Shown here piece after piece: positions 8,934 to 31,095 of a stretch of DNA of 64,000 bases. The notes beneath the pieces were generated by a model. That model had not been told where the DNA came from, did not search any database, and was given only the letters and a program-made list of their open reading frames with translations. The translations under genes and the position numbers were made by a program. How positions within the stretch are numbered: the first letter of the stretch is position 1; every line of letters starts with the position of its first letter. This stretch comes from Pavona decussata (lineage: Eukaryota), in contig CDRNST010000088.1 in NCBI GenBank assembly GCA_977016875.1, positions 248,001-312,000 of the forward strand. Reading direction: 5' to 3'.

Positions 8934-10670
8934 TCAAACATTGGTTTGATCAAGCTTGGAAAATGAGTTATGCTCTTCTTCAAGTAGTGACACGATCTCT
9001 GAGGGGTTATCTGAGTCAAAATCGATGTCTTTTTCTCGAGAACTTTTCTTTTTGTCGTTGCTGACCGAAGACTCTGAGCCATTCTCTTTCACCTCTTCTC
9101 CTTTTTCTAGCTGGACGACATTTCCGTTCCGCTTGTCATCGCTGATGCCTGTTTTCGTATGATCATTGCCATTTAGCGGTTTGAGTTCTATTTCAAGGCA
9201 TTCAGCAGAAGCCTTGCTGTTTTCAGAAGTTTTTCGAGAAGAGGCAAACACATAACTGACTTTCCTGAATTTATCATCGTCCGGATCTAACTGGCCTTGG
9301 TGTTTCAGCTTGCGACTTCTGTACTTCTTGTAAATCGTGTCAAAATTCGACACAATTACCGGCACAGGTAGGGCAATCGCTAACACACCACAAAGAGCAC
9401 AGCACGACCCAACTAGCTTGCCCCAAAGTGTCTTGGGATACATGTCTCCATAGCCGACTGTTGTCATGGTAACTAGAGCCCACCAGAATGCATCCGGGAT
9501 ACTTCGAAAGTACGATTCTTCGTCGCCATTTTCCGCGTAATAAACCATGCTGGAAAAAATGACTACACCGATAGCGAGGAAAAATATCAAAAGTCCGAGT
9601 TCACGTAAACTCTTCCTCAACGTCATGCCGAGAATTTGCAGTCCACTTGAGTGACGCGAGAGTTTAAAAATTCGAAACACACGCACAAGTCTAAGAATTC
9701 GGAGAAACGCCAGCGAAAAGTTCTGACTGTTGCTGTTCTTGAGCGCTAGCTCAACATAAAACGGCAAAATCGCCAGTAAATCAATCACGTTCAGGAAAGA
9801 ACGAACGAATACCCATTTCTGTGGACTAGCAATCAGTCGCACCAGATACTCGAACGTGAACCAGCTGATGAAAGCTATCTCAAGCTGACCGAACACTGCC
9901 TTCACTGACAGCGCATAGTCGTTATGCTCACGGATTTGCAGTTGTTTGGCGGTGTCGTTTGCAGGAATATTTTCCTCGGGTAAAACCGTGAACTCGGGCA
10001 GTGTTTCTATGCACAAAACGACAATAGACGCCACGATTACTGAAACAGACACCAACGCTAACACGCGTGCCGCTATGCTTGAATCAGGATATTCGAACAA
10101 TCTCCATAGAAACTTCTGTGCCTTCTTTTCCGGCAATTCCTGTTGCTTCTCTGGATGTTCTTCTTCGTTGAGAATGTCTTTAACCGCATTTACAGCGTAT
10201 TCGCCGAGCTCAAAGAATTGCACCTCTTCCAGTAAAATTTCCGGAGCGAGCTCGGGCGGACAGACCAATCGTCCATTTGATTGATAGAAATACAAAATTA
10301 ATTCGAACACTTGAATATTCCGATCAAAGAAATATTCGTCGTGATCCTCATCGTAGAACAGGTCTCGCTTCTCTTTGTTTCCTAGGAGAGTCGTCGGGAA
10401 CCTTTCTAATGTCTTCACATAAGTCATGTATCGGAATCCGGACACGTTCAGAACAATACGACGGCGTTTGGACGGCGCGGAGCGCTTTTTGACGTGACTT
10501 GAAAAGTTTTGTACGCCGCTATCCCCAGAAACTTCTCGATCATCACTGTCTAATTCTTGGTCGCTGTATTTTCCGTCTGCACGATCGGGAGGCACCGCTT
10601 TACTGGTTGTGATTTCCCTTTTCTTCAGCCTCAACGTGATTGCACCATGTGTACTTAAGCTCGCTCCCAT
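8934..10670 (-). CDS. Voltage-gated potassium channel, Shaker/Kv1 (KCNA-like) subunit; core coding exon, 578 aa from ATG 10670
   Basis: T1 domain (RIVLNVSG...EYFFDRN...LYFYQSNGRL), S1-S3, S4 LRILRLVRVFRIFKLSRH, pore DAFWWALVTMTTVGYGD, S6 IALPVPVIVSNF. A polypyrimidine acceptor ttttgttttgtttgtacag|GAGAAATG lies 5 nt upstream of the ATG. Confidence 0.97.
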   Translation of the reverse strand: MGASLSTHGAITLRLKKREITTSKAVPPDRADGKYSDQELDSDDREVSGDSGVQNFSSHVKKRSAPSKRRRIVLNVSGFRYMTYVKTLERFPTTLLGNKEKRDLFYDEDHDEYFFDRNIQVFELILYFYQSNGRLVCPPELAPEILLEEVQFFELGEYAVNAVKDILNEEEHPEKQQELPEKKAQKFLWRLFEYPDSSIAARVLALVSVSVIVASIVVLCIETLPEFTVLPEENIPANDTAKQLQIREHNDYALSVKAVFGQLEIAFISWFTFEYLVRLIASPQKWVFVRSFLNVIDLLAILPFYVELALKNSNSQNFSLAFLRILRLVRVFRIFKLSRHSSGLQILGMTLRKSLRELGLLIFFLAIGVVIFSSMVYYAENGDEESYFRSIPDAFWWALVTMTTVGYGDMYPKTLWGKLVGSCCALCGVLAIALPVPVIVSNFDTIYKKYRSRKLKHQGQLDPDDDKFRKVSYVFASSRKTSENSKASAECLEIELKPLNGNDHTKTGISDDKRNGNVVQLEKGEEVKENGSESSVSNDKKKSSREKDIDFDSDNPSEIVSLLEEEHNSFSKLDQTNV

Positions 10671-10888
10671 TTCTCCTGTACAAACAAAACAAAAGGACAC
10701 TAAATGAGTACAGTGTAGAGCAAATCAGAACAAAATCACTACATGCAACAGGTCTCCGACGCTTCTAACACGATACTTGTACCTAGAGCAAAATGGACAT
10801 TGTGCATTGCGGTGTTTCGCTGTACGAGGAAACTTCGCGACTCGACCGTGGACCACAGAAAAGCACAGACATCGTAGAACTTACTCAC

Positions 10889-10960
10889 CGCCGTCTCCAC
10901 ACCGAGTAAACTTAATCAGTCGCGCGTAAACAAGAAAGAATGTGTTATCATTCAGATAAC
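10889..10960 (-). other. Candidate non-coding 5' exon of the Kv1 gene (5' boundary unknown)
   Basis: Strong donor GCG|GTGAGTAAGT at 10888; no in-frame ATG upstream before a stop. Confidence 0.45.
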
Positions 10961-13900
10961 ATATGCACTGCTTCAGCTTGGGGTCAACCAGCGCTTGAGC
11001 GACACCGGTTCAAAAACTGATTAACCAAGTGAAACCCAAGCGTTTGAGTGGTTCACAACGCGTCAATCTGTCAACAATAGCCAAACTGATGAACCTTTTA
11101 TTTGCAAATTCGCAATGGTCACGCCGTCATATATGACAAAAGTCAGCTTTAGCATAAACAATTGAGGTGCATTAGATTTGAATATCGAGAACAAAACATG
11201 ATGTTGGTCCGGTCGATGCATCAAAATCCCACCACAGACAAACGTGATTTGCAAACGTGATTTCCTTCCTGTCGAGCCTCCCACGGGCTAATTTAAACCT
11301 CGGGGTTCAAATTTAAAAAATGGTAGCCTTTTTTTTTTTCCTTTAATTGAAATTCGGCCTCTTTTTGTTCATTTTATTTAATTTCGATTTTAATGGATAG
11401 CTTTGAGATCGCGTCTTCTCGTTTTCTTGAAAAGAAACAAATCCTACCTTTTTACTGTAAGTCGGTCTGAGACTGAGGCATTAGCGCAGAATATTCGGAG
11501 GCTCTGCTCTTTGGACCGTCATGTCTTATTATTAATACAATTCGTCTGACAATATGACACAAGTTTAAAAAGCATTGTCTTTCAGAGCACAAGACACTAG
11601 AAGCAAAACGTCATTGACTCTACATCTTTACACATTAGATAATAGATTTGTCAGTAAATTCAACAGTGACTCACGGAACGCTTTTTTTTTAACGCTGAAG
11701 AAAAAATTCTTGTACGTGTTGATAATTCTTTTGTTTGTGGTACCTGGATTTTTTCAGTCTCCAAGGCCCAAGACTAATTAGCCTTAAAATCGGATTTTAT
11801 TGTTTTTTCCACCAGGATTGAAGAATTAGTAGGTCCGTTGCACAACAACGCGTCAAGTAATAACAAAATGGTACGAATAAATTTTCTAAACTTTTGAAGC
11901 CGTTGGTTTTAGCGATTTTCAAGTTCCGTGCCTGGCTGGTGTAATGCTGTCACTGATATTGACTTAGCACTATGGTGTTTTAACAAATTTGCGCGCATAT
12001 TGCCAGGCTTAATGTAAGATCAGGGGGTTTAGACTTTCAATAAAGTTTTGTGCTGCATGGAATACAATTACTGGGAACAAATAGTCTTTAATCGGCACAT
12101 TGTGCTAATGAAGGCCCGCCAGTGATGCGTCAGTTTTCTGAATCGAAAAAAAGTTACTAAATGGTACGAGATGTTTAGCCGGTATTTTAACTGTTGCGCA
12201 AAAAGTTGTCTTAGGTTACTGGCCTCGGGGCAGAAAACTTATTTAAGTTACACTTGTCCAACAAAATGTGCATTTCGCGCATAAACTTTGCTTCTGAATT
12301 TTAATGACCAAAAAAATTAACAGACTAATTACTTCTGTGTATTTGACAGCCAATGCTCAGTTTAGTAAATGCCATCATATTCTGCTTTCGAATAATGCAT
12401 AACAATAAATTTTATCTCAATGTTTAGCTAAATTTGCTTGATTCATGTTCGTTTTTCAGTCCATTTTTGTGCCTCCGGTCTGTAGTACAGTAACCAAACT
12501 TTTGTTGAATGTTTAGCTTAATTTCCATGTTTAATAGCTCAAAGACAAATGCTTCTGTGACCTCCTACTAGCTTTAAGCACCTCCACAAGTATTACAAAA
12601 GGCATTCTGTTCAATTCTGTTGGGAATATAGCATTGATTTTTGAGGGATCAAATGCTTATCAAGTCCAATTTAAAAGTGGAATCTTGTTTACCAAGTTTT
12701 ATCTGTGCAAGTTCAACTGAAACTGTGATACGCATCGGCAAATTCCTTCTAGAACGTTCACTAAGACTACTATGGTGCCCCAATCCGCACTGTTATTTAA
12801 TTAAACACCGCTTGACAAGTTTGGAAGACGTGTTCTTGACTTGCTTCTTTCTAGATGTAGATCGTTGAATTCGATCTCAGAAAAGTAGTCTGACTCCTGA
12901 TAAGCGTTGAACAATGTTTTCGTTTAATTTTTTTCGTGCAAGAAACAGCACCTGCAAACTATTGCCAATGTTTTGGTACTCCTCAAAGACAATGACTCGC
13001 CATCAATCACTTAATTCTAATCATTTTGAAAAGGGGTTGAGAATATTTTGACAGCCACACACATCAAAAAATCAATAATTCACTAGTTGTTTGTTTACTG
13101 GGTTGTCTACTTGTCTGGAGATATATGTCGTTAGCGTTCGATCAGTTTTCTGTTTTTTACCGAAATAGGGTCAGAAAAGATTTCCCCACTGATTGATCCA
13201 AGTGGATGCACACAGTAGTTCAGAAATTGGCCTGTTTCACAATGAAGCACAATTCACATGGCCGGGGCACCTCTTATCCACTCATAGATCCCTTGTGGGT
13301 TAGACTAATTCCATACACTCTTTAGAAAAGTTTTTTCGTAAGTGGAAATTAAGATAAGTATTCATATAAGCGTGTGTAAGGCTCATTATCTCATCCGAAA
13401 AGAGCATGGTAGGCGGTCTCGTTCGTGAACTGGTCCAATTAAGGTTCAAAGTACGATTTACCCTCTTCCACTGCGAGGTTGTTCAGCTTAGTTCTTTGCT
13501 GAACTGGAGTTACATGATAATAATTAAATTTCTGCATGATGAATTGTTCCCTAGGCATGTAAACCAACTTTGCCATTCTGATAATGTGTTCGCGTAGCAC
13601 AGAAACTGCAAGCGACCAAGACGTGCATGATAAGGAGAAACTGAAAAATTGATGGTAATTGTACCAACCTTGGTTTAAAGTACACTGCATAACAGCACGC
13701 CAACGATGCTGCGAGTTTCACGCCGCTCGTTTCGAAGGTCATCGATAAAATTCACACAGATCAGCGCCGGGATCAAGGAAGTTTATATTTATGTCGCGTT
13801 TCACGCACGATCTGAGTGCCTTAAGTTTGTTTTCTATGCAATGCCTCTTGGGTAGTAACTGTAAGATGATCAAAAATGTCACATATGGAAAACATTTTCA

Positions 13901-14154
13901 AGCAAAACAAATTGCCTGAGGGGGTAAACATAAAAATCGACCGTGACTGGTTCTAGAGAAATGGGTAAAGCAAGCCCCAGGGTCGATAGATAAAGGCCTC
14001 TTATCTGGAGTAACTTAATTGTCCTTTCCAAGACGTTACGAGGAATGTTCTCTGTTGCTACTTAAATAGTTGATATATAGCAGAATTCTTCAGTTGGTCT
14101 CATTTGTGGCCAGTTTAACAGCTTAATTAACAATTTAATGAAGTTTTATCTCAC

Positions 14155-14284
14155 TGTCTTTCCCAGATAGCTCTAGCCTGCCTCTTTCGCACTTCCGTTT
14201 CTCGCTCTTTTCCTCGTCCACCCTCTTTTCCAAGCTTTCGTGCCTTTTTTCTGAAGAACCCTCTGAGGAGAGCAGGAGGAGCAT
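14155..14284 (-). CDS. Candidate alternative N-terminal exon A of Kv1 (MLLLLSSEGSSEKRHESLEKRVDEEKSEKRKCERGRLELSGKD)
   Basis: ATG 14284, 130 nt (43 codons+1), donor ACA|GTGAGA; phase 1, in frame with the channel acceptor; acceptor ctctttgtag| at 14335. Confidence 0.4.
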
Positions 14285-14415
14285 CTCGTTGGACTTGCGC
14301 AGTGCAAACAGTTTGCAGATGATCAATTTTCATCCTACAAAGAGGCCATATGTTTACAATGACGATACACACCTCCATAGTAATTCGGAACGCGGAATTT
14401 TTCTCTACTGTCGAC

Positions 14416-14580
14416 TTACAGTAGTGGAATCTCGATTTTTCGAAACTCCCCATTCTTCGAACCAAAAGTTGTTTCTCTTGGATTTGCTTGAGTCAGATTT
14501 TTTCCTCAGATTTTTGGAACTCCTGATTTTTCAAGCCAAATTGAGTGTCCCTAGGAGGTTCGAAAAATCGGTTTTCAGTC
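14416..14580. mobile_element. Degenerate Tc1/mariner-type MITE fragment
   Basis: Begins tacagtagtggaatctcgatttttcgaa; internal ttcgaa repeats and inverted ttcgaaaaatcg. Confidence 0.4.
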
Positions 14581-15213
14581 GTAAGGCAGCGTAGATTAAT
14601 CCTTTTACTGAAAACTTAGTTCAAGCTCGAACGGAAATTGAAATTGAAATTGAGATATTTGTTTCCTGAGTTTTGAACGGCTTGGAGACGTACCTCTGGA
14701 AGTAAAAGGTCTGGAAGGTGCATATTAATTCATCTCTCCTCTGATGCGGCGGTGGATGAAGTCTCGACTCGGGCAAAAAGTTATGGAATTGCCGTACCGC
14801 CTATGAGAAATTTTCCAATCAAACACTTCTTTTGAGAAAACGAACACTGAAAGACTCCGCGCCAGACTTGTGCCGATTACCTGCAGAGGCAGGTGTGTAC
14901 AACTCGCGGGTTCTCTAATGGTATTTTACCAGCCGTTTGACAACCGCCTCGAAAGCAATGATAAATGTCTCAACAATTCTGATTTTTGTTTCATCCAGTC
15001 AAGAGCAACGTAAGAAGAAATAATTACTTCGTAGTCTTCGTATCCTCGAGTTCTGGCGCGTGATAAGACCTCCGATTCTCCTCCTTCCGCCGGACAAACA
15101 ATGGAATTAATGCCTGTAATATGCTGTTTTTCTTGGTTATCACGGTAGACTGCACTGTTCGTGCCAAATTAAGACTGAATACCCTGTTCTAAGTTGAACC
15201 TGACCTGTGCAGG

Positions 15214-15680
15214 TTGAAACTACGTTCACGTTCTTTTTCGCGATTTGGCGTAAGACTGTGGAATGAGATACCGCGTCGTATAAGAGATTTACCTAAAAGA
15301 AAGAATTCAAAGGAGAAATTCGTACGTCGGCTTCTCCTCAATATTTTGGTAAATGAAAATGACTATATTGAAACGCCTATTATAGTACAGAAAATAGGTC
15401 TCGCTAATTAGTTGCAACTTGTTAATTTTTGCGCAATGAAAAGAAATGTGATGTAATATATTTTTTTTGTTAAAATTCGTTAAGTTTTGTTTTTAGTTAA
15501 TTTTTCGACTTTTTTTTCTTTTCTTTTTTTTGTGTGTGTGTTACTCGTGATTTCTCTACCTTCCCTAAATTCTATTTGTTCTGTCTTTGATTGTAATAAC
15601 TGTAATAATATTAATTTTATCCTAAAACAGTTGTAAGTCTGGCCCGCCTAGTTTAGCTCTCGCTACCTGCGGGCCAGTCT
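15214..15680 (+). mobile_element. 3' end of a CR1/L2/Crack-group LINE (truncated ORF2 plus 3' UTR)
   Basis: SFSRFGVRLWNEIPRRIRDL resembles the ORF2 C-terminal LWNxLP motif; followed by a T-rich UTR and terminal hairpin gcccgc...gcgggc. Confidence 0.7.
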
Positions 15681-18600
15681 CTCTTTTTTGCTAAATTTTT
15701 GAATTTTGGAATAACTTGTGAAACTCACGCCGATTTTGTCAGGTAAAATCACACTGAGACCAAATACGGATGTTTTCTCATGTATTCTTAGATCGTGTTA
15801 TGGTCTTTTTAAAGGCAACCTTGTGTTAGCTGGCATAGCTCGATTTGTTCGGATTCTTTAGTTGAAAATTTAAATCGCAGAAAATTTTAACGAACGGAAT
15901 TTATTACTCGAATTTATGGCCTGCTTCTGGCTTTAATGACATATTTACCTCCCCCCTCTCCCCCCAAAAAAGAGTAAAGGTGACATTTCGCTAAAGAAAA
16001 CGCTAGATTTTCGTCATCCTTATTTCTGAAGCGGGTAGTAAAATAAAATAATTATTTTATTATTAGATTTTCGTCACAATTTAAACCTAATTTGTGAACT
16101 GGGTAATGCCATCCGGCAGTAGCCCTGCACCTTTCAAAAGCTCTATTTTCACTGAACCCTCACAACCTGCAGCTGCATTGATTTTAGAGTTGGGAGCATC
16201 GTTCTGTTGTTCATTCTTTTGTCCTCTCGACCAACTATGAAGAAGTTTCAAACGGTGTACTTGCCCCCTTTCCGGGCAGATATGTTGCCGAAACGAACGT
16301 TCGTTGGGCCCGGGAGCAGGCGGTTCCAAAGGAAAAAGGATAAAAACTTTGAAGTCGTCGTCTTCGCATGTCGGCAAACAGATGAACTTGCAAACTCATG
16401 CTTACTTTTAACAACATCCCTGTGCGTGACAATCACCCGACACTGTTCAACTTGAATGCAGAAACGATCGACAAGGATCAAAAGGCAAATTCTCCCAATT
16501 AGTATCAAGAAAAATAACAACAATATTGGCGCTTAAAGGGTTAGCCGCCACAGGCTCCGTGAGAGAACACACCGGGTCAGCTTGCCACTACAAAATCTGG
16601 GATAATTACATCTTAGTTACGATGTAAAAACGTGTTTCATGCAGATAAAAGGCCGACCAGCAAACAGTGTACCTTTGATAAAACCTTTGATTTTGTCAAA
16701 GAGCACGGCAGTGTTTTATCTTGTGATTAATAATGTTTATTGATTTTTCACACGGTTGATATGATGTGATTTGTGACCTTTTTTTTTCCCGAGTGTGATC
16801 GGTTGCTAGTATTCTAACCAACACCAGATCATTATCTAGGAATCAATGTGTAATTTTTTTTCAGTGTGACGTAAAAATAGAACGCTATTGATGTGGTGTT
16901 GATTTTAAGACAGTCTGATTGGAAAAACGTTTGACAAAGCACCAAATACGAATTTCAGGGGCACCCAAACATTTAATGGAGAATGAGTCTTTCAACGGTT
17001 TGGTGCCATTGAACTTCAAAGGCGTGCCAAATCAGTGCATGATGGATTTCACGCTCGTCAACCAAATACGATTTCAAAGGAACATGACACTGATGTAGTG
17101 GACTGCATGGTTTTAATGCCATCAAATGTAGAAACAAAGGTCCTTGATACATGTACCAACCATACATTAGAGTGCCTTTGTTCTTTGTCAATTATGGTAC
17201 ACCTAGTAATTAGCCAGGCGCCTGCCAGGCTGGCTATCAATGGTGAATAGATCCAGTGTGGTAGCGAACATGGAAATTTTATTTATCTGAGTCTTTTACA
17301 TGTGAAGTCGAAATCTTCAGACAGTTACCGGATACACAGATTGTTTTAAGAAGAAGAGACATTAAGCTCACAGCGCCTGGAATTCCCATTAATACACGCA
17401 AAGACGGACATGGTCGAATTAATTGCGCTTTCACATTGGAGGGGTGGTCGTTGTATAAGCAAAGGGTCACGGCATACAGACATCGCCCAACTTCCACGCG
17501 AAAAAATAAAAAAACCCTTGTCAACTGAAACGATAGATTATTTGTTCTCTGCTAGCTGATCGCATAAGCCAACAGCACTGATACAAGTTTGATCCCGTTT
17601 AAACAAAACCCACGTGGCTTTTCGCGGGATTTCGCACATATTTTTGTGTCGTATGATCGGGTCGTTGGCCGTAGAAAATAAGATGGGAGTTCGAACTTTA
17701 AACTGCCTATGTTTCGAAAGTTACCAACCAGGGTAAGAGTTTAGAGTCGCTTTCTGTAAACATATTTCGGAATGCGTTTTTTTTTTTTTGATTCGTTGCT
17801 TCTCACCTAGATATATAAGGCCCTAGTTTAAAGCCTCTTGGATACAGTAGACTTGCAGTATCAGAAAATTGGAAATAATGTTAGATAAAATTGGTTCATT
17901 ACCATACACGAAATTTCAAAATAGATCAAAGAAAGTGTTCGGCAAAATGTCTTCAAAAAACTAGGGGGAAAATATGACGTTAAAAATACGAAAAAGGTGA
18001 GCTAGCATTTTCGTTAAGGTAGCAACAGCTAAGTAAAATTCGAGGTAACTTTGAGCAAGTTAAATGTTTAGCTAAAACATCCCAACAATCAAACGGTAAT
18101 AGCCTACACAAAATATTTGTTTTAAAGGACACTGACTGGATAAACTATCTGGGAGAAATTATTTTGCTAGATGTGCTTGATAGGCTGATCTGTGGTGCCC
18201 GTACGCTGAAGGTCAGTAGAGCTTGTGTAAACTTTCATTGGTATCTTTGCAACCAGAGAACTGTCTAAGGAGAGGTTCGACTGTAATAATGTTTTTTTTT
18301 TCTGTGACAATGTTATGGGCCAATGATCTCATGGCCTCGTGGCTATATTACTTCTTTTAGAATAGGATTTCTGGATGACTAAATATGAATTTAAACAATG
18401 AGCTCTGAAGATATTGTTTACCTCGTACAAATGCGGAATCGACATCGCGTTTAATCACATGCTAAAATTAGTCACATAGGTTCATTCATTATCAGCGTCT
18501 CTTTATGCAACTTAAGTTATGTGCAGTGTTTAATTTTACTTTCGCCAGTGCGAAGAAATAGTGAAGAAAATATCATACAAGCAGTTCGTTTATCAAGGCT

Positions 18601-20738
18601 ATAAAATGTCAAAATAATCCGACTATGTACCTCGGCGATTTCGACTACATCCTCGATGTCGATCGTTTATGATTGCAGTGTTTTCGTTAACGTTCGTTTG
18701 ATACGAAACATTTGTTCGACAATCACGACTTTTGACATCACGTCTGTTTCGGTAAAAATCGGTGTTATTCTTATCATTGTGGAATGAACTGAGCTAAGGC
18801 CGGTGAAAGTAAGTTACAACTTCTCTCCGTTGTTATAAGAACTTAGCTATAATATCTTGTACGTAGTACACTAAGATTTAAGGCTGGAGGAAGCTTATCG
18901 AATCAGCGCTGTTGTTGCTTTAAATGAACAGATTTTCTAATGTCTCTAATCGATGTAGATTTAATTCAGAACTGGTGTGTTAATGAGTTAGCGCACGCAT
19001 TAACCTGCTTTTCCAAGACATAAAAAGCACTGAGTCGCACATTGATTACGATAGAACGTGGTAGAGTTTGTACATGAAACTGAAAAAGTACAGTTCAGTG
19101 ATTATGCTGCATGAAGTTACTTCTAGCTTTTAAGCCTGGAGTATGCCGCGGGTCTTCAAATGGAAGCTATTGAGCAGCCAATTTCCCTGTGGAACCGATT
19201 ATTTCTCTAATTTCCGAGGTAAACTGTGGAAAGATTTAACATTTTTTCCCTTTAAAGTTGCCCGCAACGCATCCGAATTAAACCAGTAACCTTGCTAACT
19301 CGTGAATAGGAAAATATACGCACCAGGGTTAAGAAGAACACGCGAAGCACGTCTGCGCGGCTGTTGGTCCCCAGAGAAACTTTGAGTGCTCGGACTTGGG
19401 ACAAGGCGAACCGAACCGGCAATCTCTGTGTACATAGGCGCGAATTGGGGGGCGACTTTTCACGGCGGAAAAGCATAAGAGCGTCGCCTGAACACCTAAT
19501 TGCATTGCAATTTCATTTACCTTTCAAAGCGGGAGCTTTTTCTTATTCGCCTTCCAATCGCCATGTCTCTGTGGAATTCAATAGAGATCCTGGTGGATTT
19601 ATTTGTTTTGGAACAATTAAATTGTTCTTTTTGTGCTTCCATAGCTGGTCATTGTGCGGAGCAGTAGGCTATTAGCTCGCATCGTTGTGGTGGCCGTGTC
19701 AGTTCTTTTGTGTCATGGTGTCAACCATCTTGAAATAAACTATACCTTTGTCAATTTCCAGTATAATGGGTTTGTTAAATCAAGTTGTTAATCAAGATTA
19801 AGTTAAATTTAATTTGTCAAATTCAGCGCAGACTTAAAAAGACAACCGCGTGCAAAGGCTGATCATGGTTTCAGTATTTTGTCTTCTCTTTTTGAGAAAA
19901 TCACTAATTGATACCTTGCTCTTCACACAGACGGCGTTAGATAAGCACGATTCCGTTTGAAAGAAGGTATTTAGTTTAAAATCCTGTGTAGGGCCAAAAC
20001 AAGTAGAAACACCGTTTTAGGGTCACCCTTTAAAAATACTGAAGAGAACTAGCCATTTATTATTCAAGGTAAAACCAAGCTACCAAGGTAATCATTAGCA
20101 ATCTTCATAAACTCTTTATTCACTCGATCCACTTTGCGGTGGGTTCAGGATATTCATTTCTCGTTCACCTTTTAAGTGAAAGCGCGGTTGGATTTTTTAT
20201 GAATCGGGACAAAGAAATAAAACAGACGAAAACAATTTTTAAACTCCGATGTCCATCTTATAAAAAAATCATCCTCATATTAAATTTCACCATTCCCCTC
20301 CCCCTATTCTCCTTGGATTAGAAACTTTAGTTCTCACAGTATTTTTGAATTGTTTAATTAAAACCACGAAGAGACAATGAAAGTACAATGCTGAAAGACC
20401 TTTTTTTTTCAAACAACAACAACAACAACGAACAAAAAATTATAACAACAATATAGTGTTCAATCAAACTTCCCTCTCAAAACTTTGAAATGTGTTTATT
20501 TTTATCCAAGTTATAAATATTGTTACCCAACACTGCAGGTGGCAACAGATCTCTCGTCTGATATCAATGAACGGAGCATTCTTTCAAAAGTAAATTTCAT
20601 TTGAATAACATCACTGAAAAGCTATTGACCACAGTAAGGCTCTCAGGACCGTTAAGATTGTTAAAAAGGCGACTAACGCTAAGCCAGAGCTGTAAACATT
20701 TCTCAAAGTCTTGTTTCTGCTTTTATCACTTCTATTTA

Positions 20739-21287
20739 AGAGTGGTTTTCAATTGAGTGTCGTAAAACCAAACCATTCCGGCCACCAAACGGAAAAAGAT
20801 GAAGACTGGTACATTTACCCATCATCCTTAGCGTACAACCCTAAAAAACCCTAAAACTGTACAGGAAAGTTCTACAAAAACTTCGCCGACACACAAAGCT
20901 GTTTGTACAAGGACGAATTTCGCAAAAATATGGCTTTCTGTGCGCCTATAGGTTCTACTAGATTCGCAAAGTATTGTGGTAAAATGTACAGCCACCATCT
21001 TTTCCCGTACGGTGGATTCATCATTTCATGACTCTGGCCAATCGCGACGGACAGACGCAAACGGCGCGATGAACCAATCAGAACTCGAAACAAATACACG
21101 CGTAACCGGCGCCAAGCGCGGGAAAACTGTGCGAGCGAGGCGCTATTGGTTTTGGTTTCCCCCCTTGTTCCTCTTTGGTTGAAAAAGTGGCGCGAGGTTT
21201 TGTAACCAAACACAGACCGTACGTAGTAATGCAGAACTAAACCAAACCAAAAGTGTAATTTCTTGCGACACTCAATTGAAAACCGCG
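20739..21287. mobile_element. Non-autonomous TIR element (AGAGCGGTTTTCAA family)
   Basis: TIRs gtggttttcaattgagtgtcg / cgacactcaattgaaaaccgc; related copies at about 6888-7179, 8666-8882, 39825-40081 and 53960-54210 share ccaatca and ttttcccgcg motifs. Confidence 0.7.
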
Positions 21288-22319
21288 AGTTACTAATTTA
21301 TAGAAACCCGCGCTAACAAGCTATGAAAATGAATTCATAGTTGAATGTACTATTAAATGCGGCTTTGACTAGTCGAGTCAGATCCGACCAATCAGTCAAA
21401 TGGACCAAAGTAAAGCTGCGAGGCTATCATGGTTCATAAAACACAGTTTATCTGCCAAAATACAACCGATAAGAGTGATTGAAAATAAAAGGAGTGATAA
21501 GAATGGCCTCAATGTTCTTCATTTAGTTAATTAAAGAGAACCGTACACATTTCAAACTCTTCATTATAGGTCTCGGTGCAAGACGTTTCTTTGGCCGCAG
21601 GCCACTCTTATCAAAACCAAGCTAATCACTGAAAGCTAAGAATGTTAGAGATTTCCTATTTTTAATTAAAACTGTATACCGACAGTCAGAAAGAACTCGA
21701 AATTTCAAGCACTTGGGCAATATTTCCATTTGTCGTAGCACTACTTGATCGGATTATATATAAACAAGTGTGAAAAAAATTCCCATCATCTCCTTTGAAC
21801 AGAACATACGTTTTAGCTCAGCAATGAACACAAACAAAAGTCGTGTTGATTACGGGTATTTAGAGACAGATCCCGATAATCGTAGAATCTAGTTTTAATT
21901 GCCCCTCGATTGATTTAAGCTGAGGAGAGTGAAGTACATGCGCTCTTTTTACCGTCATCTGGGAATAGCACACAGAAGACACTTTTCTTAACGAACCGTC
22001 AAGTGGTTCTCCTTTTTAGATTTCTCCACAAAATTTCTTGACGTCATCACGAGCGGAACTCCGTCCGTCACGAGAATGCGCCAGCGCAATTCATGTTTTC
22101 CCGCGCTACTCGTTTCACATGAACAAATGAAAGGTTTGTGCCCTTTTGCCGTTCGCAAGAGATTCTCTCATGAAAACAATATTGAACGAGCATGTTCGCA
22201 ACCTGGAAACGTTCAAGTAGAAACATAGATGAATTGACAGAAGATGAAGGAATTACTTAACTCTTGCGTGGGATGTTTGGGTCATAATTATACAACGCAG
22301 AGTTTGGTTAAATTCTTAC

Positions 22320-22365
22320 CTACTTCCCCTACTATTTTTGCAATTCGTCCATCTGTAGCCGACAT
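22320..22365 (-). CDS. Candidate alternative N-terminal exon B of Kv1 (MSATDGRIAKIVGEV)
   Basis: ATG with A at -3, 46 nt (15 codons+1), consensus donor TAG|GTAAGA; phase 1, in frame. Confidence 0.5.
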
Positions 22366-24946
22366 ACTTCTTCTCGGCTGAAAATATGTGCGAGCAAACA
22401 TCGCGAACTTGTAAGGCTAAGCCAGACGGTGCGGTTCACGGTGAGCCAAAAGGCCTTGCGTGTAAAGTAGAAATTTAAAACAGCTAGCCCGCCGCAAAAC
22501 AACTCGATATGGCAAAAGATCAATTATTCAATAAAAATGTCACTCATCGTAATAATAACTTGCCAGCGGGAGCCGTTTTCTAGCGAAGGAATGCGACGCC
22601 CACAGGATTCCGTGTAGAAAAGATAATTTAAATTTAGCTGGAAAGACAAATCCTTTATTTCAATGTCTAAACGCTTGCCTCACTAAACAACAACTTATGC
22701 TTTTTGTTTTCAATTCTGAAGTAGTTTTCCCTTAAAACATCTGCAAGGGATAATCGGCTTGTAATGAAGATTTTTTGGACACACATGTTCCTGCGGTATC
22801 AATTTGGTACGTGTCATTGAGTAAACAGTGATTTGGTGCTCAGGCTTGCTCAGTTTATATTGTATCTTGATAAGAAAAAGGATAAAAGAAGGAGAATTCT
22901 TCCGAAAAGCATGAGATCTTTGACAATGAAAGCCACGACAAAGTAGAAAAGCGTGGATGGTAAATACCAACAGAAGTCTACCATCAGTTGAGGATAATTT
23001 AATGTGAACGTGGCATGCATTTATTAATACAAAGATAACACGACTTTCTTGGCAACGCAGTAGCGTGCAGGTGAGGCATGACATTTTAATAAAACAATTT
23101 TAAAGTAATATTTGGACAATATAAAGTGGCTTATATTCTCTCAAGATACACTCGGCTATGTACGCGCGACAGGTAACACAACGTATAATGCCATTTTCTA
23201 GTAACTCTAATAAAAAATTAATAAATAAAACAGATCGTCAGTAGCCCTGAATTAATCGGTCTGTTTTGACTAACCTAAAATGCCATGCGTTTCCTGGTGT
23301 TTTTATTAGCTATTAATGGCGCATAATTTTCAGGCAAGACCACAACGAGAATGTCGAAGATAGGAGTCCAGCACATAGTTCGTGGCTGAACCTTCGACTC
23401 AGTTGAGATGATGTATGCTTTGTTAAGGACATAGGGGTTAGTGATGAAACCATGCAGTAGTCTACGTATCTTAGATATGATGGACTTGAACTGGACTGTA
23501 AGGAAAGAAAGTTGTTGGAAAAGATAGAGAGCTATCCAGCGCAGTTACTTACTGCCAAGCCGCAAAAACTGACCTGTATGCTCTTGGGAGGACACGATTA
23601 TATTTTGATAATCATTAGAAGGTCACATTTGTAATATCTAGCTCCCAGCCATCCATCAAAACAACAATAGAATTTGTGACAAGTATTCAAGTTAGTACAT
23701 ATATACGAGTGAGCATCAGTAGCGACTGTAAAGATGCTACAGATTTGTGCGTGGCATCATTTTAATTGTACCTTCTTTGTTTTAATGTTTGTAATCCTGG
23801 TCCTGCACTTCTGCTGTAAGAACATTTCAGCAAAAATTTACATAGATTCACAAGCATAATCTCTGCCAAATTCCGTAAAGACTTTAGTCAAAACTGTTCA
23901 AGAGTGTCGAAAATGTTCTCACGTTTGTTGAAATCTTCGAGTGGGATGATGCGAGCGTTGACAGGGACCGAGACGCTTACATGTAATAATGATCAAATCC
24001 GAAGGCACAAAGTCGTAGCTGGCATGACCTAACACAAGCATAAAGCGTAGTTATTTCATAAAGAATATTACAAATAGGACATTTATAATTACGTCTATTT
24101 TCTGATCTATAGGTGAACAGGGGTTAGTTACGTAACAAAAACAAAATTTTTATTTCATACAAAGGACATTGGGTCAGATAAAGAGATGCATGCAACACGA
24201 ACTGAAGTGAAGCTGTATTCATTCCAGCTCTCATTGATTCTCGCCGCCCAAATGTAATGAGCCACAACAGACATTATTAGGGGACGGAAAAATAAGTTAT
24301 CCATATTTATGTTGCAAAAAGAACCTGAGGATGGCGTTAGCTCTCCTTTAATTAGCAATTCCGAGGTCTTTTTCAGCGACTTAATTTTTCGTCCAGTTGA
24401 CGGACTTTTATTGGCAATACGTTTTGTGCTCTGAAAAATTCCACGAATCGGCTAAACAACTCAAAATAAGCAGGGTTCGGGCATTGACAACGTTTGTCTC
24501 TAACCTGTTTTATTCTCGTTACTGTGCCATGACACTAAATTTTGGAAAAGATACGTCACAAAAAGAAAAGGAATGCTCATTACCACGGAAAATAAAAAGT
24601 CCTCTCTCTGCAACTGGATCGTAACCAGAGCAAACGGCATTCAACGGGCAACACACTGTGCTTGAACTGAATTGAATACAGGAAAAATGGGTTAAGTTAA
24701 TGACCGAGGTTATCCAGCTCAGTGCCTGAGTGAGTCTCATTTTAGTAGTCAAGGACCAAGTAACGCCAGGTCTTCTATTTCTATTGGGTCAAGCGGACTG
24801 GCTGAACTGAGAAGAGTGACGTCTTCTACTTTCGTATGAAGCAGTTAAAAGAGGAAACGTCTCCTCGCAGGCAAATTGAATGTCGCAATGTTTGTGAACT
24901 CGGCGAAGGTAGAATGAGAAAGCCACAGGGACTACACATATTCCTC

Positions 24947-25312
24947 CATATCGAAGTAGCTCTCATTGATATACCGTTCCCTAATAAGAGACTGCATTCA
25001 CGGCGAAAGCACCCTAAGTTATAAGAGTCTTGACTGGCTTAATTGATAACGAGTCTTCACTGACGAAGAGGACCTTCCATATCCAGACGTGTCTTAACTT
25101 TGGATTTCCAAGACGTTTGTGGATCCGTCGAAGATGCGGGAAAGAGAGTACTAGGACTAAACATATCATTCATATCGAAACAGCTCTATATACCGTTCCC
25201 TAACAAGAAACTACATTCACGAAAGCATGCTAGGCCATAAGAGTCTTGAACTTAGCAGATAACTAGGACCTCCCATTTTCAGACGTGTCTCGACTTACTG
25301 GGATTTCCAAAG
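24947..25312. repeat. Diverged tandem duplication (about 225-bp period)
   Basis: catatcgaa..gctct..tataccgttccctaa..aga.act.cattcacg..ataagagtcttga..cagacgtgtct..ggatttccaa occurs at about 24947 and 25171. Confidence 0.75.
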
Positions 25313-25645
25313 GCTTTTAGGAAATGTGTTAACTGGTATTCATGAAGATCTCTTGAAATCTAACGTCCTTACACTAACCGGTCTTAACTCCAGAGTGGTG
25401 GCAGAAAAAATCGGTTGTCGGTGAGATTTAAAGCGTGAAATACTGTATCGAAATTGTTACAATTTTCTCCACTCAGCAAATTAAATTTTTGGGATAATTG
25501 CTTTCAATATTCATAACACTAAAAGCTATTTTAAGAAACCGGCATCAAGTGAAATTTAGTAACAAGCAAGACTTCGATCGTGTCATGATTCACGATCTCC
25601 AAACTTAGAAGATCCTTATACAAGACATATTAACGTTCACCTTAC

Positions 25646-25739
25646 CCAATGATAATTCTGTGTATTTTGGCAACTGCTTGCTGGGGAGTAGCAATTCACA
25701 CGCGAGACAAAAACATTCGTCATGTAATGATGAAATCAT
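25646..25739 (-). CDS. Candidate alternative N-terminal exon C of Kv1 (MISSLHDECFCLACELLLPSKQLPKYTELSL)
   Basis: 94 nt (31 codons+1), donor TGG|GTAAGG; phase 1, in frame. Confidence 0.25.
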
Positions 25740-25919
25740 AATTCATGAGATCGCACCATGTGAAACAAATCCTGATTGGTTCACCTCTGTTATCGATAGC
25801 AACCTACGATCGACCAGTGAACTTAGGGAACTCCTAAGTCACATCTGTTGGCATGAGATATTGCTCGTAAATAGCACTAAGAACATCTCCTGTGATGTAG
25901 CAGATATTTGCCCTAATTA

Positions 25920-26401
25920 CTCGGGCCGTAAGGCGGACCGAGTTAAGGTTTCGGTAGCATTATCGAATTCTTTTTTCTTTTTGGGGTCGCGATGGGCCGA
26001 GGGATAAGACTTCGGGCCACGAGTTATTGTTCTCGGTCTCGTTTTTTGTACTCGGCTGGTACGAGTTACGTTTTCTGTCGTATTATCAAATTCTTTAAAT
26101 GCTCGGTCGCGTTCTTTGTTTTCGGGCCGTGAGGAGTGTTTACAAAATGCGAGCCAGACGTGCGAGGCATGAACAAAACATGCGAGGCATGCGAGGCATG
26201 AACTCTCAACCCCAACATAACTGACATAAACTGCTAACCGTAACTGGGGAGCTTTTTAAGCTAATCTAAGTGCTATTTAGGCTAACTGGAGTGCTCTTTA
26301 GGTTAACCGGAGTGTTTTTAGGCTAATCTGAGTGCCTCAAGGTTAGTTTTGTTTAACCGAAAATTTGGCAACTAAATCAGTCTATGACCTTGCGGGCCAA
26401 G
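25920..26401. mobile_element. Possible MITE with internal 9-bp and about 21-bp tandem repeats
   Basis: Imperfect TIR ctcgggccgtaagg / ccttgcgggccaag; internal (gcgaggcat) and (tttaggctaactggagtg) repeats. Confidence 0.4.
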
Positions 26402-26584
26402 ATAGAAAAAGATGTCTTACGTTTACTATAGAAAAACAATCAATGTAGAAACGGTTTCTGTCTTCAAATGAAAGGTGAATAACAAATCTTTTCCCCTGAA
26501 TTTCATTTAAAAATATAAACAGCGAAACATTGAAAAACGTACAAGGCTATAAACGTACGCGTGATGCGTAACGTTACTCTAGAT

Positions 26585-26981
26585 CCCGGGGGGGGGGGCG
26601 GGAGGGGGGTACTCAACAGATGCTTGGGTAGGGAGGTGCGGCCCGGGCGTTCAAACCCTGACCCTGTTTAAGACACCATTCTCCGATTTTCCTATCCCGT
26701 TTAATACAGAATTCAAAATTTTCAGGCCCTTTCTAAGACATTTAACCCAAAATCACACCCTGTTTAAGACTAGAATGAAATAAGAATACACCAGTTTCTT
26801 ACTGTATTTTAATGCATTGGCAATCACAATCTGTTTAAGCCATTAGGTCATGTAGGGATAGACAGAAAGTGATAAAATAGATACCCCGTTCAAGACAAAA
26901 CACCCTGAAAACCATACCCTATCGGGCCGCACGTCCCCGTTAAGGTCACATAAGGGAGTATCCCCCCCCCCCCCTCCCGGG
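26585..26981. mobile_element. MITE with G/C-run TIRs and a 7-bp target-site duplication
   Basis: CCCGGG(G)n..tactc / gagta..(C)nCCCGGG, flanked by TCTAGAT at 26578-26584 and 26982-26988. Confidence 0.85.
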
Positions 26982-27222
26982 TCTAGATCATACCGAGAAT
27001 TACGATCCGTCATTGACCCGACGTCACATACATATTAGGACCGTACAAATGGTTTCTGTTTCTAAACGAAAGGGGAAAACGTAAGGATTGAAGCCCGGGG
27101 ATAATAAAAAGCATTCGTATGACAAATGTCATTTTCCCTTGTACTTCAATCTGACTGCAAGAAATGCAATTCTATCTGGTGGTTACTTATTGCCTCACTA
27201 TATCTCTGTATCTATCTATTTG

Positions 27223-27306
27223 GTAGGCTGCAAGCAAGCTCTCTTGGGGGTGGGGGGCGGGAGGGGGAAAGAGGATCCACCCCCAAGAGAGCTTGCTCGC
27301 AGGCTA
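27223..27306. mobile_element. Short palindromic TAG(C/T)C...G(G/A)CTA hairpin element
   Basis: taggctgcaagcaagctctcttgggg / ccccaagagagcttgctcgcaggcta; similar elements at about 6576-6645, 28889-28965, 30094-30183, 32540-32592 and 38873-38993. Confidence 0.65.
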
Positions 27307-29505
27307 TCTATTTGGGGGAATTGCGCGATGCTGGAGGTTATCATTGTTAAAAGATAGTAGGCTTTACGCACCACACAGTCAAATATGGCCCGAGTATAAG
27401 CTGGAAACAGCTTCTTGTTTATATCTTAAGATTTATCTTAGATAGGATTTTGTGAATCCGGCCCAAGGACAATAAGTTTTACAACCTTCTCAAAAATCTG
27501 CTCAGTTTAAAGGGGCACCCGGACAGTCACAGAGATTTTGCTTTTATGTTAGTAAAAACTGGCCAAATTAAAAGGACCTCTTTTCTAGGATTTTGTTGTG
27601 TTAAACAGCTGTCTGTAGCCTCCGAGGCTTAAAGAAATTACCAGCATCAGTTACTAAATATCTGGCTTGAAGACTTGATTCATAAACGAATTTAGAATTT
27701 GGCCATTTTGTCAGTAAGGTAATCAGTACTCGCCGCACTATGGGAAGGTAATGTTCAATACCTTTCATTCTTGATATTTCATCCACAGACTCAAAGTAAC
27801 AACCACAATACACATTACCTAACTGGAGATTTGACTGTGGCTGAAAGTGAAACGGATAAAACTTCCAAGAGACTGACGTTGAAGAAACAATAGAAGATAG
27901 TAATTATCGTTTGAAAAAGAGAATAGTTAACTGTGACTGTTTGCAATTTGAAAATTCCTCAATAAACAAACAAACAAACAAACAAACATTAATCCAGGAA
28001 TGGAAAACCTAATGTCTAAGCCGGATGTTGAACAGACAACTTTAAAGTGAAACTGGTTGAAACCAGCTGGAAATCCTGTAGTGCGTACAGCACATTCACT
28101 GAAGCTTTACCTACACATATGTTCTTCTGCCTTCAATTCAGTCCATAATTAGGCATGAACAAATTGGATGTAGTTGCTAGAGCGACAGTCTCAACAGAGA
28201 CTTTTTTCTAGAGGTGATTTTCTAGGGGGAAAAAAGGCCCCGTTTTCCCTCGGCTGGGTCGTAATTGATAGTACCTGCAAACATTGCCCAGTTTTCCTTT
28301 TTTTTCGGATTTTCCAAATCATAAATTTTGTTCATCTAGTTTTTTTCTTTTTTTTTTTTAATTCTTGGTTCTCGATTGAAAACAAAATACCAATTGCTCC
28401 ATTTCCATAAATATTCAGTGTCACTAAATTAACTACTCAGAAATTAAAACCTTAAAAACAACTGAAAAATAATAAAACTTGACATATGTATAAGTATGTT
28501 ATGCATTCCGTGATCACTTTGACACATCGGCACATTTCACGGCCGTTGTTCCCCAAACTATAAATCCTAGTTTTAACCCTTTGGTTCACGTTGTAGCCTG
28601 TCGAATGATCTTGGGTTCTCAGAGAAAATATTTTATTTAACAAAATAGCCTCCCTTAACTTAACTGGCGGTATTGTTTCTTTGGAAGGCTTAAAGATTTG
28701 GTTGCGAACCAGCAAGGAAAAGTTAAAAAGACAACAAACCCTAAACCTGGAACAAGAGGTACGTGACATACAGATCCGACGAAAGTAGAGATTCCAAGGA
28801 GCTGAGGGCAGGCTGTCAGTGAACAAGAAATATCACGGGGTGGGGGTGGGGGACTGGGAGAGACAGCATCCCACGCAAGGATGTGAGATAGTCTGAAATA
28901 TCAGCCGTCTCCTCCCCCTAACCCACAGGGAGCGCGGGGGAGGAGACGGCGGACATTGCAGACTAGGATGAGTGACAATTCCCTTAGTCACTTCATCCAT
29001 GATAAGAACACGTTAAAAACTGCAAAAGCCGTGAACGAAGATCCTGCTTGCTTGTACGTTGGATAACATCTTAACTTGAAGAAGGCTGGTTTGGCCGGCC
29101 GAGATATTGTTTTAAAATATATTACGTTGCGTCAGCTTTGCAGTTGTCTTTGGACTTCTCATCGTCTATGATAAGAAAACCGGAAACAAACGCTAACCGC
29201 ATAGGGTCTTATAGGTTATCTATAGGTTATTTATAAGAGGGAGAGAAAATGTTTTTCAACGTTTAGGATTTATAGTAATTGTTGTTCTTGGAGCAATTTC
29301 CTAGCGTTTGAATGCGTATAAACAGTGATAGGGTCCCCTCGTCAGGCCCTGACGTCACATAAATATCTAATGCTTGCGGTTTTGAAACCGGTAAGTTTAA
29401 TACTTGCATTGTTGTTAAGCGAAATATAAATCAATATGAATAATACTCACTACGAGCCTACATTGCCGAATTAATCGATTGAAAATGGGAAAAGACACGC
29501 CTCAC

Positions 29506-29620
29506 CGTTGGTTGAATTCTCCAGTACTTTGCCATCTTCACTCGTGTTTTCTCCTCCTAAGGTAGCCATTTCTTCGCAAATCGTCGCAACGCCACGGAAG
29601 CTTTTTCGATTTAAAAACAT
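29506..29620 (-). CDS. Candidate alternative N-terminal exon D of Kv1 (MFLNRKSFRGVATICEE-MATLGGENTSEDGKVLENSTN)
   Basis: In-frame ATGs at 29620 and 29569 (gaaATGg), donor ACG|GTGAGG at 29505; phase 1, in frame; possible acceptor ttcacag| at 29682. Confidence 0.5.
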
Positions 29621-29835
29621 GACGTCTCTTAACAACGAGGTAGATGATTCATTCAATGAATCTACGTTTGTGTTCGTGTAACTGTGAATGGCCAATAATC
29701 TTGAATATTAGGATTGAGCAAACTTTGCGCACTCAAGACAAATGTCCCGACTCAATGGCGGAAATATTACGACAAATATATATACCACAACCCTTGCTCC
29801 GGAACTGAGACTAAGGTATCACTTTCAAGGATGAA

Positions 29836-30340
29836 CCGGGGGGGTGGAGGGGTACTCCCATATATAAGCTATATTGGTATATGCCGATGTGGAGTATGGT
29901 TTTCAAGAAGTTTAGTCTGGGATAGGGAATCACGGAAATCAGAGAGTTTTGGTCTAGAATAGGATATCACTTTCCAGGAAACTGATCAACCACTTGAAGA
30001 ATTTAATCTAGACTGGGTTGTTTCCCGGAAATTGACACTTTTTTTGCTGTACACGTAGAAAGATTTTGTTTCCTGACTGGACTGTGGTAGTGATAGCCTC
30101 TCACGCAGTCGGCGTTTTTTAGGGGACTCCTGTTGTAGGAAAAGGTAATACGAGTCCCCTGAAAACGACTGCGTGGAGGGCTATGATAGTGACAGAGTTT
30201 CTGGAAAATAGCGAGTCGGAGAAAGGGTAGGGATTTTTGGTCTTTAGTCTAGTATACGGTTGCAAATGCAGCTGAACTTGCTCTGGTTTAGGGAAAGGGT
30301 TTCACCCCCACCCAAAAATGTTTAGAGTACCCCCTTCCCC
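29836..30340. mobile_element. Older MITE with related ggggtactc/gagtacccc TIRs, carrying a nested hairpin element at 30094-30183
   Basis: ccggggg..ggggtactccc ... gagtaccccc; nested tagcc..acgcagtc..aggggactc / gagtcccct..gactgcgt..ggcta. Confidence 0.65.
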
Positions 30341-30877
30341 CAAGCTGGCCACAAATCACATGGTTCCTTTTCGACCTAGTGATATCATTACTAGTACCGT
30401 ACCTTAAGTCCAAACCTCGACATAAAAATACCGAGTTTCGAGTTGGTAAAATATGATACAGTATCAAGCTAGCAAACAGTATGTGTACCATTGAGGATCG
30501 AACCCAGAGATTTTTCGGTGCGAAAATGCCTGTTGCGCGTGCAGGTCGATAAGGGGCCACGAGTGGCGACAGGCACCAGGCACGTTCTAGTTCTGTAGCG
30601 CGATCTGTCATCTCCTATATTTTAAAAACAACAACTGAAACAGATGGCAACTGTACACTCCCGGAATTAAACCTTGCCCTGCGTAATCTAGATCTGGCTC
30701 TAACGTCTTAATGGTGATATATCAATTCTAATGAAAGCTGCACTGTAAGCAGTATTTTGTTGTGACGTTTTTCATCGTCCGCGTCCGCGTTTATGGTATT
30801 TATATTGCGCTAGTTTTTATATATAAAAAAGGACAGTAAGTTTTTCTAATTTAACTATAAAAGTTAACGTTAAAAGA

Positions 30878-30916
30878 GAACGACGTTTCGACCGTCCGAC
30901 GGTCATTTTCAAGTTC
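30878..30916 (-). ncRNA. Second identical minimal hammerhead ribozyme motif
   Basis: Exact reverse complement of 32046-32084. Confidence 0.75.
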
Positions 30917-31095
30917 AAAATGAGAAGTAAAATATGTGTTTATATACAATTGTGAGAAAACTAATGAGATGCTGACTTAAAAAGCTCTAAGATATTCACA
31001 TCTAAACAATATCAAAAATAATAGCGTGAATGATAAATACAAAGGAACGCTAAAAACGATAAAAGGTATTTAAAAGGTATTTAAAAGTGAAATAA

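Follow-up and report, generated by a model that had tools for sequence, protein, structure and literature searches.

Alternative 5' exons are well described in the Drosophila Shaker gene, which uses ShA, ShB, ShH37 and others (Kamb 1988, Timpe 1988, cited in PMC3519636). In the Nematostella channel NvShak5, the inactivation time constant, tau(inact), is 14.1 ms at +60 mV and the V50 of steady-state inactivation is -59 mV (PMC3519636). The form cloned was unextended, and deletion of its residues 2-58 abolishes fast inactivation, which is therefore of the N-type (PMC3519636). In the sole functional work on cnidarian Shakers, Jegla et al. (2012) could clone no splice variants and stated that alternative splicing "does not appear to be an important mechanism" (PMC3519636), and a genome-scale survey from 2023 did not examine splicing in detail (PMC9989356). 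Our literature search found no description of cnidarian Shaker isoforms with alternative N-termini, and among the papers searched NvShak5 was named only in PMC3519636. Here we describe a Shaker channel gene of the stony coral Pavona decussata and the approximately 19 kb upstream of it, in a window of 64,000 nucleotides (contig CDRNST010000088.1, positions 248,001 to 312,000; coordinates below count from the first letter of the window). We consider it likely that five or more small 5' coding exons in this upstream region join the acceptor at 10675 in phase 1 as alternatives, alongside at least one non-coding 5' exon, that the channel thereby acquires differing N-termini, and that sea anemones and stony corals have this design in common. 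The choice between the exons is proposed to tune inactivation kinetics or membrane tethering.

Nearly the whole channel protein lies on a single exon, sited behind a splice acceptor:

8934-10675, minus strand: main exon of the Kv1/Shaker channel, placed by sequence and open reading frame, Pfam, the ends of the RNA contig matches and NvShak5 orthology.

The coding sequence runs on the minus strand from the ATG at 10670 to the stop at 8934 and encodes 578 residues. Pfam finds BTB_2/T1 (PF02214, E 2.4e-23, residues 72-160) and Ion_trans (PF00520, E 1.8e-52), and the translation contains the Arg/Lys-repeat S4 RILRLVRVFRIFKLSRH and the pore motif TMTTVGYGDM of a six-transmembrane voltage-gated core. 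Named matches in the protein search were shaker-related tsha2, KCNA1/2/3/7 and insect Shaker, not Shab, Shal or Shaw, with orthologues spanning 97% down to 58% identity. The best Nematostella match is NvShak5 (58% identical over 90% of the query), which in the supplement of PMC3519636 begins MGANLGGHTGRQQITLQPRSKAV, as does the common part of the Nematostella isoforms. Going by best hits, the shared junction motif and gene structure rather than by a tree, the channel is the stony-coral orthologue of NvShak5, in the Kv1/Shaker subfamily. An initial annotation of this DNA had described an acceptor 5 nucleotides (nt) ahead of the channel ATG, and it is indeed present: the exon starts at 10675, the acceptor reads ...tttgtacag followed by GAGAAATG, the minus-strand letters preceding the exon are ...tttgtttgtacag, and the colinear match of the RNA contigs stops at 10674/10675, the main exon boundary. 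We also compared the locus with a congener, represented by an ENA contig of a close relative and followed to the equivalent of window position 39.9 kb (protein 97%, DNA 85-94% identical). Its acceptor has AAG for CAG (ttgtaAAG followed by GAGAAATG; L004 ~18675, equal to window 10676-10678), so that the AG is kept and the base at -3 is changed.

The evidence for alternative exons begins with the relatives. The isoform sets compared were those of RefSeq for Montipora (X1-X6), Acropora (up to X7), Pocillopora (X1-X4), Stylophora (X2-X3), Actinia (X1-X5) and Nematostella (X1-X4). The isoforms, two to seven per species, are identical from ...GE-MGA(S/N/T)L on and differ only upstream, where they form the following classes:

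Class A, MF(T/S)R(T/A)Y...DGRIA...: Montipora (MFTRTYFQPSKNRSLSADGRIAKVVRNV), Acropora (equivalent sequence) and Pocillopora (MFSRTYVRHKRKMSQTDGRIASVI); transcript P0192 has MSLTDGHIARIVGGV.
Class B, ...RRRSSRVL(V/L)SP: Montipora and Acropora; in sea anemones ending ...KILTTP or ...RVLTRP.
Class C, MHNAHITL, MHNVYYIL, MHNANIQL or MHNAHISL: Montipora, Acropora, Pocillopora and Stylophora.
Class D, M...FRALK(R/K)SL..(D/G)GKL(L/M).D(S/T)A(N/D): acroporids.
Class E, MQC(T/Y)LNQ: Montipora, Pocillopora and Stylophora.
No extension, starting at MGA...: several species.

Contigs of 2.2-2.9 kb from Logan and JGI encode spliced C, D and A forms, and since spliced contigs cannot derive from genomic DNA, these three classes have transcript support apart from the gene models. 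Other Logan and ENA "proteins" with long N-termini were rejected as isoforms, being merely read-through of the intron pyrimidine tract on genomic contigs. Likewise, P0178/L009 is colinear genomic DNA of a relative (95.6% identity) and not a transcript, and locus L001, at 100% identity, is the same assembly as the window and no independent comparison.

Five of these classes have a counterpart in the window, listed here from distal to proximal:

29506-29620, minus strand: coding part of exon D; ATG at 29620 or 29569, ending ...SEDGKVLENSTN, last base G, donor GTGAGG.
22320-22401, minus strand: coding part of exon A; conserved ATG at 22401 (MFARTYFQPRRSMSATDGRIAKIVGEV), last base G, donor GTAAGA.
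19324-19435, minus strand: coding part of exon B; ATG at 19435, 37 residues ending ...RRRASRVLLNP, last base G, donor GTGCGT.
13669-13690, minus strand: coding part of exon E; ATG at 13690, peptide MQCTLNQ, last base G, donor GTTGGT.
10783-10807, minus strand: coding part of exon C; ATG at 10807, peptide MHNVHFAL, last base G, donor GTACAA.
10676-10782, minus strand: intron between exon C and the main exon, 107 nt, GT..AG, seen as a joint in RNA contigs.

The assignments were made exon by exon, with a donor-anchored ungapped test in which every phase-1 GT site on both strands was scored against each isoform class. Each of the five exons ranked first for its class: A (22320) scored 37.5 against 20 for the runner-up among 3711 sites, B (19324) 40.7 against 14 among 3924, C (10783) 28.3 against 15.3 among 4821, D (29506) 28.7 against 14.0 among 3924 (compared with the acroporid D endings ...GGKLMEDTAD and ...NGKLLPDSAN), and E (13669) 35.5 against 21.5 among 5080. 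All the top matches for classes A-E lie on the channel strand, with scores 1.6 to 2.9 times that of the runner-up. Gapped alignment gave a score of 81 for exon A and, against Montipora isoform X1, 78 for exon B, while for exon D the gapped local alignment to class D was not significant (score 26); exon D was accepted because of the donor-anchored test and synteny. Within the window, no convincing match was found for class F (Acropora palmata), for classes G and H (Nematostella) or for the remaining N-termini seen only in Actinia.

The arrangement of the exons matches that of the relatives as well. From distal to proximal the window has D at 29.5 kb, A at 22.3, B at 19.3, E at 13.7 and C at 10.8, ahead of the acceptor at 10675. 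The genomic order in Montipora is D-A-B-E-C-main, with 7.4 kb between D and A as against 7.2 kb here, and in Pocillopora verrucosa A-B-E-C-main. Exon B has the same relative position in Pocillopora and Montipora, and the GTTGGT donor of exon E is kept in Pocillopora. The exon E peptide is identical to the Montipora MQCTLNQ at all seven residues (MQCYLNQ in Pocillopora and Stylophora), and in exon C the ATGCACAATG core, the CTAG-GTA boundary and a few more columns do not vary among five species. All five exons end in G and in phase 1, which gives the junction codon GGA (Gly), then GAA ATG, so that the spliced products would read ...Gly-Glu-Met-Gly-Ala-Ser-Leu-Ser after differing start peptides of 7 to 38 residues. 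In every class the frame runs free of stops from the exon ATG to the main ATG. The locus has several 5' exons with an ATG of their own that share a single acceptor in frame, five in number and homologous to isoform-specific exons of the relatives.

Four RNA runs (X1, X5, X6 and X8) were aligned to 10200-16199, which covers exons C and E, the 10889 donor and the segment 14155-14284 discussed below, and the alignment shows them to be RNA. One contig each in runs X1, X5 and X6 (depth 25-32; X1 and X5 from one sample, X6 from another) joins 10783 to 10675 and skips exactly the 107 nt of 10676-10782; the intron ends at this 10674 to 10782 joint are CT..AC on the plus strand, which is GT..AG on the minus strand. 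These spliced channel contigs extend 30-57 nt into exon C, and exon C is used in this species. They carry its in-frame ATG and so would yield a protein beginning MHNVHFAL-GE-MGASLS. The contig of run X8 matches up to 10676 and then continues for 243 letters located nowhere in 10200-16199, which would fit a distal exon (A, B, D or another). A low-depth unspliced RNA piece lies at 10660-10811, and a further low-depth piece at 10895-11083.

The initial annotation had also proposed alternative ATG-bearing N-terminal exons ahead of the channel exon, and this idea is borne out by the isoforms of the relatives, the five classes in the window and the spliced exon C. Its specific candidates were four ATG-initiated, stop-free, phase-1 segments on the minus strand, which are all present in the sequence with the donors GTGAGA (14155), GTAAGA (22320), GTAAGG (25646) and GTGAGG (29506). 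Homology and conservation identify the second and fourth of them as exons A and D. The second, given as 22365-22320, is a real exon with a different start, since 22365 is a second in-frame ATG that lies 36 nt downstream of the conserved ATG at 22401 (MFARTYFQP...). The first and third are chance open reading frames, broken in the congener:

14155-14284, minus strand: rejected candidate 1 (MLLLLSSEGSSEK...), with frameshifts in the congener and no class match.
25646-25739, minus strand: rejected candidate 3 (MISSLHDECFCLAC...), with a stop in the congener; unique sequence.

In the congener's copy of candidate 1, the third codon lacks 1 nt, and several more indels have lengths not divisible by three. 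The segment matches no isoform class, has an RNA depth of 0 in the four runs, and ends in A, which would make the junction residue Arg and not the conserved Gly. In candidate 3 the congener has TCA changed to TAA at codon 4 and no other in-frame ATG, and there is again no isoform-class match. Candidate 1 adjoins a dispersed repeat of about 150 nt (14576-14421), for which the 602-Mb genome gave at least 332 first-look candidates (81-89% identity), and this repeat, 14421-14576, accounts for the spike in RNA-contig depth seen in bin 14400-14599. High-copy repeats are also found at 15200-16199.

These two failures, together with the statistics of the search, are what speaks for the explanation that all upstream mini-frames arose by chance and that a single non-coding 5' exon feeds the channel. 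The interval 10676-29900 contains 24 GTRAG sites on its minus strand, 8 of which have a phase-1, ATG-initiated open frame of at least 10 residues, compared with 6 of 28 in the plus-strand control; block shuffles gave a mean of 3.9 qualifying sites (standard deviation 2.1), and 54% of them reached at least four. An ATG with an open frame and a phase-1 GTRAG is no better than chance as evidence for an exon, about four hits being expected, and the criterion has no statistical power. It also failed in the other direction: exons B, C and E were overlooked because their donors are not GTRAG (GTGCGT, GTACAA and GTTGGT), and the exon seen in use in the examined RNA runs (C, 10807-10783) was absent from the list of candidates. 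The chance explanation is nevertheless extremely improbable, as the five exons match the isoform exons of relatives at rank 1, with large margins and in conserved order, spliced transcripts exist in the relatives, and the exon spliced to 10675 in the RNA of this species is not a non-coding one but exon C, with its in-frame ATG.

The conservation in related corals that had been suggested as a check turned out to hold for exons A and D and not for candidates 1 and 3, and it extends to the exons that had been overlooked. In the congener, exon E is 100% identical over 81 nt, exon B is 3 nt shorter through an in-frame deletion and carries two synonymous changes, exon C has one Ala to Val change with frame and donor kept, exon A retains frame and donor (MFTRTYFQPRKKMAATDGRIAKIVQEV), and exon D retains MICEEMATLGGKNMGEDGKLLENSTN and ...MATLGGKNMGEDGKLLENSTN as well as the donor.

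Two conserved elements of the upstream region do not appear to be coding:

10889-10977, minus strand: conserved non-coding 5' exon segment, donor GCG followed by GTGAGTAAG.
12485-12619, minus strand: conserved non-coding island of ~90-130 nt, 75% identical to Pocillopora and 82% to Montipora, core GCTAGTAGGAGGTCAC...CATTTG...AACATG.

A non-coding donor had been noted here from the start, and GTGAGT does follow 10889, behind an open frame that has no in-frame ATG, so that its use would give the unextended MGASLS protein. The donor is conserved in five species (the congener, L009, Montipora with GTGTGT, and Pocillopora, besides the window), and an island at 10977-10881 is conserved with Pocillopora, while the frame is not conserved, with a 2-nt indel in Montipora. 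As judged from these sequence comparisons, 10889 is a genuine non-coding donor, and it may share a first exon with the donor at 10783; the four RNA runs showed no joint from 10889. The island at 12485-12619 was considered as a sixth coding exon (MEIKLNIQQKF-G) and rejected, because Montipora and Pocillopora preserve neither its phase nor its last base. A further non-coding first exon is one possible role for it, a promoter or regulatory element of the channel gene another. Similar conserved islands lie upstream of exon B (19631-19552) and of exon E (13917-13827).

The existence of at least one conserved non-coding exon (donor 10889) raises the question of whether the upstream exons, though real, act only as alternative promoters and 5' untranslated regions, with the protein always starting at MGASLS and the upstream ATGs being incidental or regulators of translation. 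The main ATG stands in a strong context (A at -3, G at +4), the MG and the ball-like MGA(S/N)L..HGAITLRLKK are nearly invariant, NvShak5 cloned from the main ATG is functional and N-type inactivating, and the Gnomon default is the longest open reading frame, all of which would fit. We nevertheless regard this as unlikely. A scanning ribosome reaches the upstream ATG first, and, from Nematostella to corals, phase 1 and the terminal G are kept in every class and species, with no class having an in-frame stop ahead of the main ATG. The conservation is at the level of amino acids, as in MQC(T/Y)LNQ, MHN....L, DGRIA and RRR(A/S)SRVL..P, and the changes in exon B are an in-frame indel and synonymous substitutions, whereas the truly non-coding 10889 exon loses its frame in Montipora.

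A number of points weigh against coding exons as the likely reading of this locus. The window exons share order, phase and Gly-Glu junction for A-E with the RefSeq sets of Montipora capricornis/foliosa, Acropora spp., Pocillopora verrucosa/damicornis and Stylophora pistillata, but those isoforms are automated models from other genera, with 76-79% protein identity. RNA in the window species backs class C only, within 10200-16199, and exons A, B and D lie outside that stretch; exon E, inside it, has zero depth in the four runs. No D-like exon was found in Pocillopora, and relative to the congener exon D has four non-synonymous and two synonymous changes and an ATG at 29620 that is not conserved. 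Initiation at the upstream ATGs is something that we infer, and the strong main ATG could be used through leaky scanning. Exons C and E add just 10 and 9 residues, and an effect on inactivation or myristoylation stands as a prediction.

As to what the extensions would do, the orthologue offers the best lead. It is plausible that exon choice swaps inactivation peptides, because inactivation of NvShak5 is N-type and needs residues 2-58 of the unextended form. The unextended N-terminus of the coral channel has an uncharged tip, MGASLSTHGAITL, followed by RLKKR, nearly invariant in corals; this resembles an inactivation ball, as a matter of resemblance only, and would be the N-type ball of this channel. 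An extra 9-40 residues ahead of it, junction Gly-Glu included, would alter or mask the ball, and the extensions placed before it differ in character, D being acidic, A aromatic and basic, and B carrying RRRAS. Any extension would also remove the N-terminal Gly needed for myristoylation at the MGxxxS-like motif. Exon choice would thereby tune inactivation kinetics or membrane tethering. Most exons probably each have their own promoter, and transcripts from non-coding exons should begin the protein at MGASLS.

It is possible, if somewhat doubtful, that the extended N-termini are made but mainly switch other properties, such as the myristoylation Gly, a protein kinase A-type site (RRRAS in B), the Cys at position 3 of E, targeting or partner binding. 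MGASLS fits the loose N-myristoylation pattern, from which extension removes the N-terminal Gly, RRRAS or RRRSS is conserved in exon B of complex corals, and MQC is conserved in E. The pattern G-x-x-x-[STAGCN], on the other hand, is very common, B of Pocillopora has LRKLS and not RRRxS, and an effect on inactivation is still compatible with these properties, the N-terminus of the orthologue being an inactivation domain.

Comparison with the known systems places the origin of this design well before the present locus. Its independent evolution here, as first suggested, is contradicted by Nematostella: the orthologous Kv1 gene NvShak5 (RefSeq tsha2, X1-X4) likewise has one large exon with the acceptor 5 nt before the ATG, a GE-MGA(N/S)L junction, and, over 22 kb, three alternative exons that all end in G ahead of a GT donor. 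Class B ends in ...KILTTP in Nematostella and in ...RVLLNP in exon B of the window. The two differ in that the published clone and physiology of NvShak5 are of the unextended form only and that classes G and H of Nematostella have no recognisable counterpart in the window. Judging from isoform X1 (P0171), which has an extra segment of 19 residues (AVLLENEVQSYSKDLLRQR) between class B and the main exon and an Arg-Glu instead of a Gly-Glu junction, an internal cassette exon exists in Nematostella beside the alternative first exons. Among the species examined, C, E and A occur only in stony corals and D only in Acroporidae and the lineage of the window. On this comparative evidence both sea anemones and stony corals have the design, which is ancestral within Hexacorallia and independent at most relative to Bilateria. 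The likeness to Drosophila Shaker lies in a Kv1 gene with several mutually exclusive N-terminal exons on a common core, which in the fly set the rate of N-type inactivation. Drosophila Shaker, in contrast, has a multi-exon core and alternative 3' ends, while the core in the window is one exon, and its N-terminal peptides have no sequence similarity to those of corals. Nor is the cassette hidden, as had been thought, since the automated RefSeq annotation of relatives already shows such isoforms. The collections searched contained no annotation of them for the window species, and they are undescribed in the literature; with the isoforms already in the automated RefSeq sets of relatives, no new principle is involved.

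The 5' region of the channel gene is bounded by a neighbour on the opposite strand:

37311-38081, plus strand: open reading frame of a neighbouring gene, 256 residues, no Pfam hit.

It has 75% DNA identity to a block about 2 kb upstream of the channel gene of Pocillopora verrucosa (L003 361-1112) and is probably the first exon of a divergent, syntenic neighbour; the conserved island 38061-37310 was accordingly rejected as a channel exon. Between exon D and this gene, the window has a segment of 1.29 kb (30850-32139) that the congener contig lacks, the flanks being joined directly there (L005 reverse-complement 7187-7197). The segment holds a minus-strand open reading frame of 204 residues (31096-31710) with a weak match to GIY-YIG (E 5e-4, below the Pfam cut-off), and the whole has the look of a Penelope-like retroelement fragment present as a polymorphic insertion.

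In conclusion, we tentatively suggest, as a view that falls a little short of probable, that one anthozoan Shaker gene has kept five to seven alternative N-terminal exons since before the split of sea anemones and stony corals, that these reshape or mask the inactivation ball and switch off a possible myristoylation site, and that they are convergent with the splicing of Drosophila Shaker. If true, this would give Kv1 genes a second instance of N-terminal exon choice, probably independent of the first. The lesson for genome annotation is that the coding exons of an "intronless" cnidarian channel gene can include some that are small, lie far away and have weak-looking donors; homology finds them and donor consensus does not. 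The orthologue of NvShak5 carries deeply conserved alternative N-termini directly ahead of the segment for N-type inactivation, contrary to the conclusion that splicing is unimportant, and the view suggested here would overturn the published one that cnidarian Shaker diversity arose by gene duplication alone.

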